A DNA stretch of 64,000 nt, from positions 16,565,208 to 16,629,207 of the forward strand of contig OU015568.1 of the NCBI GenBank assembly GCA_907165135.1, read 5' to 3'. Positions 40,082-64,000 of this stretch are shown here, piece by piece. The number at the start of each line of letters is the position of its first letter. Position 1 is the stretch's first letter. Source of the stretch: Oikopleura dioica (taxonomy: Eukaryota > Animalia > Chordata). Under the pieces are notes generated by a model that worked only from the letters and a program-made list of their open reading frames with translations, made no database searches and was not told where the DNA came from. Both the position numbers and the translations under genes were made by a program.

Positions 40082-40288
40082 GGAGGTGGATTTCTGGATA
40101 ACCAATAAGATTGCTGCATTTAACTTACCGATCAATCAAAACCCTGATCCGTAAAATCACCTCTTAATTTTGGTTTTACCAAATATTTTGGGTTAAACTT
40201 ATTTATGGAAGTGATTTTATGGGTCAGAATTTTGATTGGCCGGTAATTCAAATGCAGCAATCTTATTGGTTATCCGGAAATGCATTCC
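40082..40288. mobile_element. Hairpin MITE-like element with ~71-bp inverted arms
   Basis: ATTTCTGGATAACCAATAAGATTGCTGCATTT.. is mirrored by ..AAATGCAGCAATCTTATTGGTTATCCGGAAAT. Confidence 0.8.
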
Positions 40289-46691: not shown

Positions 46692-46891
46692 ATGACTCAT
46701 AATTATTGAGAGTATGTAGGACTCAAATAATGAGCAGTAAAATAATGAATTTGATGCACCCAATTATTCGTTCCTAATTATATTTTATTGGATAATAAAG
46801 TAATTAGGAAGAAATAAGTGGGTACATTCAAAATTCCTTATTTTACGACCCAAAATCTGAGTCCTCCATAATCACAATAATTATGACTCAT
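46692..46891. mobile_element. ~200-bp MITE-like element with 33-bp imperfect inverted ends
   Basis: tgactcataattattgagagtatgtaggactca versus rc of the right end, tgagtcataattattgtgattatggaggactca. Confidence 0.6.
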
Positions 46892-51633: not shown

Positions 51634-53475
51634 ATGATGTCGCTAGGAACTCCAGGAATGTACCCAAGCGGCGCCCCAGCTCCACCACCACCCGGAGCAG
51701 TGGACCCTGGTACCATCGGCCAAGCCGCTCCCTACATCATCCCAAAGAAGGTTCCCAAGCCTGGCCAAACGTAATTCATCTCCTCTTGAATAAATTAAAA
51801 ACTCACTCTTCCAGATCAAAGGCGACGCCGATTTCAATGCTCCAGGAACTCTGCCAAAAACTTTCAAAGACGCCTCGATATGATTTACTGACAATGGAGG
51901 GCCGTGCGCATCAGCCTAGTTTCGTCTTTCGGTAAGCTCAAGACTGGACTTGCCAACCTGTGTAGAAACCTGAGTCAGGGTTTTCAAAGAGCTTTAGTTG
52001 AAAGCGTCGCTCTCGCTTTATTCTTTCAGCCAAAGCGCTTTCAGAACCCTGACTCAGGTTTTCACACAGGCTCCGAAGCCCGAAAGCTGGGACAAAAGCT
52101 AAAACATGAATTCAGATGTGTTGTCGGAGACGTAACTGGCGAAGGGCACGGTACGTCGAAGAAATCGGCGAAGCACCAAGCTGCTGAGAACGTCCTCACG
52201 CAGTTGAAATCTGGTGTCGTCCCGGGAGAGGAAAAGCCGCCGATCAAAGGGGAGGAACTCGAAAAGGATCAGTCCATGATTCACGCTGGGGAGATCAATC
52301 CGATTGGCACCCTTCAGGTTTTAGCCGCAGATTAGCCCTCTATCTCGTCCCTTATTCTTTAGCATCTGTTGATCACAAACTTACATAAGCTCTAGGAACT
52401 TGTCGTTTCCCGAGGATGGCGCCTTCCGGACTACTCCCTGGCTTCCGAAGCTGGCCCGAGCCACAAGAAAGAGTTCATCATCTGTTGTTCCGTCGAAAAG
52501 CTCAAAGAGTACGGCAGTGGTAGTTCCAAAAAAGTCGCTAAACGAAATGTAAGTTCCCACTTTTGAAAAGGATGAAAATTGAGTGAATTTAAGGCTGCTG
52601 GTTCAATGTTATCCAGATTGCGGGAAATCCCATCGGACTCGAAGGAACATGTTCTAGATACCGTGAGCATTACGATTGTTGTTAGACTTTTGAAGAAATT
52701 TTTAAGGATGATATTGACCCTTCGAGTTTTTCCAATGGCCGCCGAGGTCTTGTGCCTCTCGAGCTCTTGCGAAACAGCAACGGAGAGAGGATAACAATCG
52801 CCAAAGGTAATAAGAATGCTAGAAGAAGGGTGAAGAATCTGACTGGCGGATATTCTTTCGTGCGAAATCTGATACAATCTAAAAGACCATGCGAGATTAA
52901 AGGAATTAACTCAGCATGTGTCTAATGAAACTGCCTTTTCATAGTGTCTCATGCGCGTTAAAGCCTTCATTGATTCGTTCATTTTTGCCAAAAGTGAGGA
53001 AAATAATCGATTACTAGCAGAATAACAACTTCTAAGTTTGGTGTTTTAGTAAACGAATCCGCGGCGGACCCGATTCTGCAATTGCACGAGTACTCAGTCC
53101 AGCACCAATTCTCTGTCGCATTCCTTGACATAAGTAAGTCTTCTTGTTCTCTTCTAGGGTTGATTGTTTTGTTCAGAGGAACGCTCCACTGTGGGCCTTG
53201 TTCAGTGCTTTGTCAGGCTCACTACGATGCCAGTCTCCGTGCTCAACGGAGAAGGAGCCACCCTCACCGATGCGCATAATCATGCTGCACGAAATGCTCT
53301 TCAGGAATCGAGTTTTATATTGAAATAACCCTAGGATTAGGCTCTTTTTAAAACGAAACCGCTTTGCCTAACCCTTAATTGATTTCACCAAAGATGTTTT
53401 AAGGGGATAAGATGCGTTAGAAACTCGAGACAGTACTTGAAGATCATGGGTGCAGAAAAGCCATTGACTGGCTGA
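51634..53475 (+). CDS. TARBP2: TRBP/PACT-family dsRNA-binding protein (3 dsRBDs; TARBP2/PRKRA co-ortholog)
   Basis: ATPISMLQE..EGRAHQPSFVFRC..SKKSAKHQAA; NPIGTLQELVVSRGWRLPDY..GPSHKKEF..SKKVAKRNAA; HNHAARNALQ|YLKIM. Confidence 0.9.
51957..52069. mobile_element. Mini-MITE, family A, in a TARBP2 intron
   Basis: CCTGTGTAGAAACCTGAGTCAGGGTT...AACCCTGACTCAGGTTTTCACACAGG. Confidence 0.8.
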
Positions 53476-61046: not shown

Positions 61047-61615
61047 CTCGTCCCCTGCAATGATCTCAAGAGCTGCATGATCTGACAAACTTTCCCAAAC
61101 TCAAACACAAGCAAACCAAAAAAAAACATCGTCGTACTGTTTTTTATTATCCAAACCTCTTTTGTTGCCGCCCAAGATTCAAAAATCTTGAAATACCGTT
61201 TCATCAATACTAAATATATATATTTATAATTCCGTTTTTTTTTTCAATACAAATAATGAAAATGTCTTCAAATATTCAAATATTGCTTCAAGCTGTTCCT
61301 TTTCTTACTTTTGCGATAAATTAGTTCGATAGTTTCAACGTAAAACTATCAAATTAAAAAAGTACTGTTGTGTTTCCAAGAAAAATACCACCGTGTTCCT
61401 TTCAAAAAATTTCCCTGTCGTTTCATTTTCCTTGTTGATTTCAAAAGCGAAGAACTGGGTTCGTAAAAAATGAATCTTTCAAATTTTTGAAACAACGTTT
61501 TTTCAGAAAAGTTACTCAGTTTTACCTGTGTTTTCGTTTACATCCTGAAGAGGCGCAAATAAACGGATTCCAATTCAATTGAAGAAAGAAAACAAGAAAC
61601 AAAGAGATCTCTAAA

Positions 61616-64000
61616 ATGGCGAAAAAGACTTATGCCAAGGTTTCAATACGGAAAATCCTCTCTAAAAGCGCTAGAATTCGCGCTCAAGTTTCATATTTAA
61701 CCTTTTGAAGACCTGCTCTTCAAGCTCCTCCTCATCGGCGACTCCGGTGTTGGAAAAACATGTGTTCTTTTCAGGTAAGAGGCTGCGTTCGTCCCTTTTT
61801 CATCCCTTTTCAAGATTTTCGGACGACACATTCAACACAACATTTATTTCCACGATCGGCATCGACTTCAAAATCAAGACCGTCGAGCTCCAAGGAAAGA
61901 AAATCAAGCTTCAAATTTGGGACACTGCCGGTCAGGAGCGATTCCACACAATCACCACCAGCTACTATCGGTAAGATAGAGTACAAAAGTGTTTTTCTAC
62001 CGCTCCTCGCCCAAGGCGCTTTGGCCGAGTGGTTACTTCGTTACTCAAAACTCTTTTCAACTCCTGAACTCTGAAAAAGTCCCGCGGGGAGGAATCCCCG
62101 TCGCTCGTTATTTCCGAGCAAACTACTCCCGCTCTCGCCTTTTGTTTCATTTTTCAATGTCATCATTAGTTAAACAATCTCAAGACTTCCTAATCCCCTT
62201 CTGAATTCATTGACAGAGATGGATCGTGAGGTCACGGGATCGAGTCTTGTCGGAGGCTTGTTTTTTCGGCTTATTTTGGTCTTATAATTTTGATTTATTG
62301 TTATTCAATTTGACAGTAATTTGAGGCTAGTAGCCTCAAACAGTGTTATTTCTTTGATAAACTTAGTTGAAGTGGCATTATTTTTCAGCATTTGCTGACG
62401 CTATAATCAAAGAAGGCGCGTGATCGAATCACGATGAAACAGATTATTTTCAGTTCGACACTCATTTTCAAGACTAACCCAGCCTTTTTGTTACTCGAGC
62501 TCAAGGCGCTCTGGCCGAGTGGTTACTTCGTTTCACCGACTAGCAGTCTCCAGTTTCGTGAGGGCGTCCAGTCCAAAGCATGATTTCAGGATCACTTCCA
62601 TGGGAATAAATTCCCATCGCTCAATATCTTGGCATACTACTCCCGCCGTCGCCTTTTGTTCTTTTCAAGAATGTTTTGAAAATGATTAGGGCCTTTCATA
62701 AAATCAACAACAGTCAACCGATCTGATTTTTATGCATTTTTTGGTTTATTTTTTCATGTCATTCTGTCATGTTCCCACTGGCAACACTAAATTTGCAGTG
62801 AGGGCCGTAAAACTTAGGGGTACAAGTACAGTAAGGAACTGCGAAAAGAGTTTTAGGCCATTCGTGAGTCCCATATCTGACACCACATGAACCCCCATTT
62901 TGACAAGGATTTTCCGAGCAGGGCGTAAGTTCGCAAAATTTTCCGCTGAATCCAAGAGTACAGGAACATCGGGTTGAATATGTTGGCTCCACGTTGCGAG
63001 TAGCAGCGTGTGGCAAGCTCATGCAACGACCGGAATTTTCACAGGGTCGAGTGGTACAAGATTCGTTTTTCTCTGAATTGCTTGGATTCTGGAGTGAAAA
63101 AGCGCAGACGACAGTTATGGCGAAAACAATCATCGAAATGCTGAAAAATGCAACTGCTTTTTTCGTTCTTGAGTTCACACATCGCCGAAAGAAAGATGGT
63201 TTTTCTTCTTCCATGTCAAAATTTTCATATTTCATATTTAGAAAAGTCCTAATATTATCGTTCTGCTCTTTTATCTCCAGCATTTATTGAGATCGAGCCT
63301 GAACCATTGAGTCGGAACTATCCTCGCTTTTGTATTTCTGTAGTACCCTTATCGGCGATAGCTTATCTGTTAAATTTGTCTAACTTCAATGAAGAGCTAC
63401 TTATTCTTAACTTGAATCACACTGATTCAACGGCAAAGCCCCAGTTCTCGGGCAAAAAGCAAGTTTCTCAAGGCGAGTGCTCAAGGCGCTCTGGCCGAGT
63501 GGTTACTTCGCTACCAAAACAAGCAAATATGTTTCCAGTTTCTGACAGGATTAGTCCACGGGAGTTCCCGTCGCTCATCATGTGAGCATACCACTTCCGC
63601 ACTCGCCTTTTGCTATTCTTCATAAAAATGATGAAGGCCTTATCATCAAATCGAGTGTCATGCTGTTTTTTTTTGAACAACAGAGCTACGAGGTCGAACC
63701 CTCAGCTGAACCTCTTTTTTACGTGACTAAAATCATTCTTTCAGCGGAGCAAACGGAATTCTCCTGGTGTACGACATCACGCAGCCGAAGACATTCGACA
63801 ATATTTCAAAATGGCTACGAAATATCAACGAGCACGCGTCCGAAGATGTCGAAAGGATGCTGATAGGTAAGTCGCTCATTTCTCCCGCCGATTCAGCTAA
63901 TGACACTCTCAGGAAATAAATGCGATATGGAAGATAAGCGTTTAATATCGGAGGAGCGTGGGAAGAAAGTCGCTGAAGAAAATGGAATTAAGTTCTTTGA
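61616..64000 (+). CDS. RAB10: Rab10 GTPase (runs off the window end)
   Basis: MAKKTY|[74 protein letters not shown]|[17 protein letters not shown]. Confidence 0.93.
62015..62143 (+). ncRNA. Vault-RNA-like Pol III RNA, copy 1 (~129 nt)
   Basis: 5' GGCGCTTTGGCCGAGTGGTTACTTCG (A-box plus GGTTACTTCG), 3' CGAGCAAACTACTC..CGCC followed by TTTT; the two ends are complementary. Confidence 0.6.
62505..62657 (+). ncRNA. Vault-RNA-like Pol III RNA, copy 2 (~153 nt)
   Basis: Same 5' motif, 3' GCATACTACTCCCGCCGTCGCC-TTTT, and internal hairpin ATGGGAA/TTCCCAT. Confidence 0.6.
62759..63283 (-). CDS. Single-exon type II membrane protein with two EGF domains, nested antisense in the RAB10 intron
   Basis: 174-aa ORF with [22 protein letters not shown], then [25 protein letters not shown] and [25 protein letters not shown]. 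Confidence 0.8.
   Translation of the reverse strand: MLEIKEQNDNIRTFLNMKYENFDMEEEKPSFFRRCVNSRTKKAVAFFSISMIVFAITVVCAFSLQNPSNSEKNESCTTRPCENSGRCMSLPHAATRNVEPTYSTRCSCTLGFSGKFCELTPCSENPCQNGGSCGVRYGTHEWPKTLFAVPYCTCTPKFYGPHCKFSVASGNMTE
63485..63611 (+). ncRNA. Vault-RNA-like Pol III RNA, copy 3 (~127 nt)
   Basis: Same 5' motif, 3' GAGCATACCACTTCCGCACTCGCC-TTTT, and internal hairpin ACGGGA/TCCCGT. Confidence 0.6.

Follow-up and report, generated by a model that had tools for sequence, protein, structure and literature searches.

In Oikopleura dioica, the Rab10 gene carries three repeated units within a single intron. What are these units, and are they genes? The stretch analysed here (below, the window) is 64,000 nucleotides (nt) of the Okinawa lineage, OKI2018_I69 (GCA_907165135.1, contig OU015568.1), and an earlier note had read the units as a cluster of three vault-RNA-like genes. 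From the sequence comparisons given below, we are highly confident that they are real, conserved RNA genes of the RNA polymerase III (Pol III) type. Their identity is less certain, and most likely they are very divergent vault RNA homologues.

The limits of the units were set by direct reading of positions 61600-64000, together with scripts and a covariance model (Table 1). All three were located where they had been claimed, in the same direction on the + strand. The host intron was also as described: the splice joint 61970>63749 was present in three RNA runs, the flanking open reading frame (ORF) showed 98-100% identity to Rab10 proteins (exon 2 alone compared), and a Ras Pfam gene call covers the host gene in the OKI2018_I69 locus record.

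The shared 5′ and 3′ blocks were confirmed. The 18-mer GGCCGAGTGGTTACTTCG, composed of a perfect Pol III A box and GGTTACTTCG, occurred exactly three times in the window (62023, 62513 and 63493), while none was expected by shuffling with three mismatches allowed. The 3′ pattern CCGCNNTCGCCTTTT was mismatch-free at the three unit ends only. The A box (TGGCCGAGTGG) is perfect against the consensus TRGCNNAGTGG and sits 9 nt from a purine start, which is preceded by a pyrimidine in every unit; at the other end of the window units, CGCC is followed by four T residues (T4). The first 28 nt were identical at 27-28 of 28 positions among the three units, and the last ~60 nt at 37-41 of 56. The centres, described earlier as differing, could not be aligned and varied in length (13-21 of 43 columns identical).

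Table 1. Positions of the units and neighbouring features (window coordinates unless contig L003 is given; H1 and H2, first and second hairpin).
Feature	Position	Strand	Details
Rab10 exons flanking the intron	about 61815-61970 and 63745-63866		
Rab10 host intron	61971-63744	+	GT..AG, 1774 nt
Unit 1	62013-62143	+	131 nt, T4 included; A box TGGCCGAGTGG at 62022, GGTTACTTCG at 62031, 3′ CGCTCTCGCC-TTTT; H1 CGGGGA/TCCCCG, H2 GCTCG/CGAGC
B-box-like 11-mer GGATCGAGTCT	62237-62247	+	94 nt after unit 1 terminator, in T-arm-like block, then T6
Unit 2	62503-62657	+	155 nt, T-run included; head and tail as unit 1, longer centre; H1 ATGGGAA/TTCCCAT, bulge in H2
Nested ORF between units 2 and 3	62759-63283	-	151 amino acids from ATG 63215; 174 amino acids from 63283
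Unit 3	63483-63611	+	129 nt, T-run included; head and tail as unit 1; H1 ACGGG/CCCGT, H2 GCTCAT/GTGAGC
B-box-like 11-mer AGGTCGAACCC	63691-63701	+	80 nt after unit 3 terminator
Bergen-type unit uA	L003 2468-2621		
Bergen-type unit uB	L003 2670-2802		

Are the units maintained by selection? The strongest evidence that purifying selection acts on them, the so-called variable centre included, is the comparison with L001, a contig of a closer relative that was reached in ENA metagenome data via the nested ORF and contains an orthologue of unit 2. Unit 2 was 95.5% identical in this contig, and along its first 93 nt 92 bases were identical, with a single gap column. Elsewhere the identity was 82% in the left flank, 64% in the downstream spacer, 71% in the right flank and 88% in the nested coding sequence, so that unit 2 changes more slowly even than the coding sequence adjoining it. 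Three of the four substitutions fell in H2, where they convert one 5-base-pair hairpin into another. Because unit 2 is more alike in the two sequences than its flanks and the nested coding sequence are, the units are under selection. The centre of unit 2 was 100% conserved, which suggests that each paralogue has its own sequence-specific partner. No unit was present in the 967 nt of contig L002, where the nested gene has a more distant homologue.

Through a metagenome scan for the 18-mer, five loci were obtained. Contig L003 was of O. dioica type; L004-L007 were GC-rich bacterial sequence and were rejected as chance 18-mer matches. In L003 the equivalent Rab10 intron (2440-2951) contained two units, named uA and uB, and the reference scaffolds of the Bergen lineage, FN653024.1 and FN654492.1, carry units identical to these. 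A Rab10 intron with two units was found both in these scaffolds and in a marine contig from JGI. The locus is kept in this second, deeply diverged lineage of O. dioica, the North-Atlantic type, whose exons are only 90-95% like the window. The Okinawa intron measures 1774 nt with three units and the nested gene, whereas the North-Atlantic one measures ~510 nt with two units, and only the units and the last ~80 nt could be aligned between the Okinawa intron and that of L003. Between the two lineages the heads were identical at 25-27 of 28 positions and the 3′ domains at 30-44 of 54-56, with the centres at background; over all units compared, 25-28 of the 28 head positions were identical. T4 follows CGCC in four units and T6 in Bergen uB. 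The intronic location is not general, because in the plankton Rab10 contigs L008-L010 the intron at the equivalent position was only 45-70 nt long and held no unit. A scan of viral contigs gave no match.

These comparisons bear on the possibility that the units are non-functional repeats, either decaying pseudogenes or a tandem duplication within the intron resembling that of short interspersed elements (SINEs). The units were duplicated as modules together with their downstream flanks, Bergen uA is degenerate, and unit 1 contains an internal T4 at about 62053-62056, which could end Pol III transcription early. We nevertheless consider this explanation very unlikely, considering that unit 2 far exceeds its flanks (64-82%) in identity with L001, that heads and tails are kept between lineages whose introns are otherwise unalignable, and that the position is orthologous in both lineages. 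Neither an A-rich tail nor a target-site duplication was found at the unit ends, and a model built from six distinct units detected no further copy in 132 kilobases (kb), composed of the 64-kb window and ~68 kb of related loci.

The ends of the units pair as had been claimed. Unconstrained minimum-energy folds of the three window units were closed by AAGGCG/CGCCUU, a short UGGC helix and GAGUGGU/ACUACUC. UUACUUCG remained unpaired at the mouth of a multiloop, which contains the variable part and two hairpins: H1, rich in G and C, and H2 (GCUCG/CGAGC, with variants), the latter being additional to the earlier description. Fold z-scores against shuffles were -3.1, -1.35 and -2.1 for units 1, 2 and 3. 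Panhandle, H1 and H2 appeared together in the unconstrained folds of five of the six distinct units, with z down to -3.4, and the panhandle around the variable centre was also recovered in the RNAalifold consensus. Overall, 91.7% of the cells in the consensus structure form pairs, compared with 41-61% when the partners are slid.

Compensatory changes in the hairpins, which the earlier note had reported, were supported in part. By direct reading, two positions in H1 (C-G to U-A and G-C to A-U) and one in H2 are doubly changed, and the terminal helices are nearly invariant. In the formal count a single pair changed on both sides, with a score reached by 48 of 500 shuffles, and formal covariation of the units is thus weak and not above shuffles. 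Structure-aware realignment of H1 and H2 left the register of unit 3 unfixed, and for this reason the formal pair count is an undercount. The argument from covariation to selection on structure did not hold formally; it is the conservation relative to the flanks that shows selection instead.

To which family do the units belong? At gathering thresholds, Rfam gave no match anywhere in the window. With E-value thresholds (E up to 10), Vault (RF00006) was the only family matching the units, and the better match to another Rfam family that the earlier note regarded as a refutation was not found. Unit 1 obtained 25.6 bits over a full-length model alignment (model 1-99) and Bergen uB 21.7 bits. The Vault consensus is followed in the 9-nt leader, in GCUUU before the A box, in UUACUUCG after it and in the tail CGCUCUC..CC-UUUU. 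At model positions 7-29, 19 of 23 positions were identical in the head, where the A box is followed by GGUUACUUCG, and the tail CCCGCUCUCGCCUUUU was aligned to GCGCUgUCCggCccUUUU of the model. This vault-type 5′ block is exact in five units and carries one A-box mismatch in Bergen uA.

We favour vault RNA because several features occur together: a Pol III-gene layout with the vault-type head (9-nt leader, A box, then GGUUACUUCG), a panhandle of both ends running into an oligo-U terminator, a fast-evolving centre, a small same-strand cluster of paralogues, and conservation across lineages. Small clusters would agree with the ascidians, for which the scan results in the PMC8704543 supplement give 1-4 candidates. 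The unit lengths stand at the upper end of the range of 84-141 nt given for vault RNAs in PMC8287541. According to PMC2770079, which cites Stadler 2009, vault RNAs (vtRNAs) were reported from all major deuterostome lineages, and an MVP of O. dioica was included in an MVP tree (PMC3762200). In the tunicate scan results of the PMC8704543 supplement, RF00006 candidates (1-4 per species, 47-60 bits) are given for nine of ten genomes and none for O. dioica. This agrees with the earlier remark that such a locus was not known from larvaceans, and the units are probably vault RNAs that the published search missed.

Thus the Pol III anatomy and the vault-like 5′ block of the original vault-RNA reading stood, while membership in the family is unproven, and a number of observations weigh against it. 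The scores of 25.6 and 21.7 bits are below the gathering score of 34 and far from the 47-60 bits of the ascidian candidates, and units 2, 3 and Bergen uA gave no Vault match at E up to 10. Over the whole window the match of unit 1 has an E-value of 0.28, comparable to chance microRNA matches, and the Vault score by itself proves nothing. Unlike vault RNAs, the units contain no internal B box: no match to GGTTCGANNCC was found at two or fewer mismatches inside any unit, in which the B box had already been called degenerate. In the Vault alignment the B-box columns of the model are deleted, and the conserved H2 occupies the place that the model reserves for B box and 3′ strand. The location in a Rab10 intron and lengths of up to about 151 nt are further differences. 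GGCCGAGTGGTTA, the stretch of the head that comprises the A box, is typical of transfer RNAs (tRNAs) for Ser and Leu as well, and for this reason only ~10 nt of the head are vault-specific. Bergen uA departs by its A-box mismatch, a mismatch in helix P2 and a different minimum-energy fold. The internal T4 of unit 1 and the weak formal covariation also count on this side, and for MVP and TEP1 in this genome the evidence comes from the literature.

Among the RNA reads, only single ones touched the conserved unit ends, in oligo-dT and single-cell complementary DNA libraries of the North-Atlantic-type lineage; the runs were assigned to this lineage because the loose ends of their reads match the exons of L003. 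Only one RNA run had words of the intron, and its contig fell on the nested EGF gene and none on the units.

The tRNA-like head raises another explanation, namely that the units form a lineage-specific Pol III RNA family derived from a tRNA gene, with the likeness to vault RNA produced by shared promoter constraints and no link to the vault particle. The head would then be of Ser/Leu type, H1 would correspond to a long variable-arm-like hairpin, and a T-arm relic would lie downstream. The A box and the next bases appear to fit the D-arm pattern of class II tRNAs (Ser/Leu), the G/C-rich hairpin recalls their long variable arm, T-arm-like blocks with B-box-like 11-mers are present 80-94 nt downstream of three units, and the Vault score is sub-threshold. 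A TGGCCGAGTGG-type A box and T-arm-like relics near the genes are also shared with tRNA-derived SINEs. However, no tRNA family of Rfam matched the units at E up to 10, whereas Vault did, and ARAGORN, at default and relaxed (-ps) settings, found no tRNA in the intron, neither in the units nor in the T-arm-like blocks. Unlike class II tRNAs and SINEs, the units have no called cloverleaf and their ends form a long panhandle, and unlike tRNA-derived SINEs they had neither dispersed copies nor a tail or target duplication within the 132 kb searched. The leader, GCUUU, UUACUUCG and the CGCUCUC..CC-UUUU tail also follow the Vault consensus. We regard a tRNA origin as rather improbable, though it is the main rival of the vault RNA reading.

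It was also considered that the units might be no Pol III genes at all, and be cut from the Rab10 pre-mRNA made by RNA polymerase II, in the manner of intronic small nucleolar RNAs (snoRNAs). They are indeed intronic, share the strand of their host gene and have no canonical internal B box. But the A box stands at the distance from the putative start found in tRNA and vtRNA genes, the T-run terminator follows directly 3′ of the 3′ strand of the panhandle, exactly at its end, and no snoRNA family of Rfam matched the units. We consider this explanation very unlikely.

How, then, might Pol III be recruited to genes of this kind? Downstream of the units we found B-box-like 11-mers, of which AGGTCGAACCC after unit 3 is homologous to AGTTCGATCCC, located 87 nt after Bergen uB (L003 2889). 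The 11-mers that follow units 1 and 3 and Bergen uB lie in a homologous block resembling a tRNA T-arm, followed by a T-run, and an A-rich element at about -30 (TATAAAAAG, TACAAAAG and GCAAAAAG) precedes the same three units. By chance ~2.4 B-box-like 11-mers would be expected in the intron, close to the number present, and consequently weight attaches only to the conservation of their position. Such a downstream element is absent after unit 2 and Bergen uA.

The U6 gene of yeast, SNR6, has a TATA element at -30, an intragenic A box and a B box downstream of the terminator. The three units just named resemble this layout in the intragenic A box, in B-box-like elements 80-94 nt past the terminator and in the A-rich -30 element; we infer the likeness purely from this arrangement, from which unit 2 and Bergen uA depart. 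Judged from their place in the sequence, the 11-mers at 62237-62247 and 63691-63701 would be putative downstream B boxes. A stronger version may be proposed, in which the internal B box gave way to a split promoter, composed of the A-rich -30 element, the A box within the gene and a B box 80-94 nt past the terminator, whole modules were duplicated, and the centres took paralogue-specific functions. The last part was suggested because the centre of unit 2 is fully conserved between diverged populations, and if the proposal were true, the RNAs would have sequence-specific targets rather than be generic vault cargo. As a whole we think this proposal unlikely.

Some further sequences near the units are recorded here. 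A block at 62205-62262, after unit 1, resembles the 3′ half of a tRNA, with AGGTC, a T-arm-like stem-loop, an acceptor-like CGGAGGC and T6; it is conserved in L001 (1234-1170, - strand), and related blocks are present after Bergen uB (L003 2870-2925) and after Okinawa unit 3. Another B-box-like 11-mer, AGTTCGACACT, was found at 62452-62462, 51 nt upstream of unit 2, within a 35-nt stretch identical in L001, and the neighbouring sequence has insertions and deletions.

The product of the nested ORF has one hydrophobic stretch, seen by eye, and a pair of EGF-like domains (30.8 bits for Pfam EGF); AATAAA lies downstream of the ORF. It is a neighbour of the RNA genes and no part of them. This EGF gene is absent from the gene list of the OKI2018_I69 locus; homologues were found in L001 (78% identity) and L002 (53%), and a marine metatranscriptome contig matched it over 62947-63219, apart from 8 differences. 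At the Rab10 locus of Bergen the search for this gene gave nothing, a result of little weight as the query was translated out of frame. Upstream of its start, at about 63300-63330 (+), lies the motif CCATTGAGTCGGAAC, conserved in the window, L001 and L002, with two copies in L002; the motif may be a promoter element of the EGF gene.

A P4-ATPase gene was found near Rab10. Elsewhere in the window, ARAGORN called an 86-nt tRNA-Arg(CCG) at 51644-51729 (-), where Rfam gave no tRNA, neither with the gathering score nor with E-values up to 1, and the call may represent an intron-containing gene or a pseudogene. Two hairpins, at 46750-46831 and 40125-40247, matched plant and other microRNA families below threshold on either strand, with 29-34 bits and E 0.01-0.07, and are probably palindromic repeats.

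Taking the units as vault RNAs, we may propose how they work. Each of the three would be an independent Pol III gene for a structured RNA of 125-151 nt. TFIIIC and TFIIIB would be loaded via the A box, possibly aided by the A-rich -30 element and the B-box-like element 80-94 nt past the terminator, additional elements that we propose because an internal B box is lacking. The T-run would stop Pol III, and the transcript would take up the panhandle fold. As a vault RNA homologue it would then either associate with TEP1, the cap protein of the vault, within the MVP particle, or remain free as a riboregulator, as most vtRNA does in human.

What is new here is the presence of two units in the shorter Rab10 intron of the North-Atlantic lineage and the conservation of unit 2 in L001. 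With five paralogues in the two lineages and one orthologue, they provide concrete candidates, all conserved, which can be added to the family model for finding vault RNAs in other appendicularians. If the vault reading is true, a vault RNA can drift to having no internal B box and a length of ~150 nt while keeping head, panhandle and terminator, and O. dioica would offer a compact system for the role of the variable centre. If the units do not bind vaults, they would form a new family of conserved Pol III RNAs, found in a chordate.

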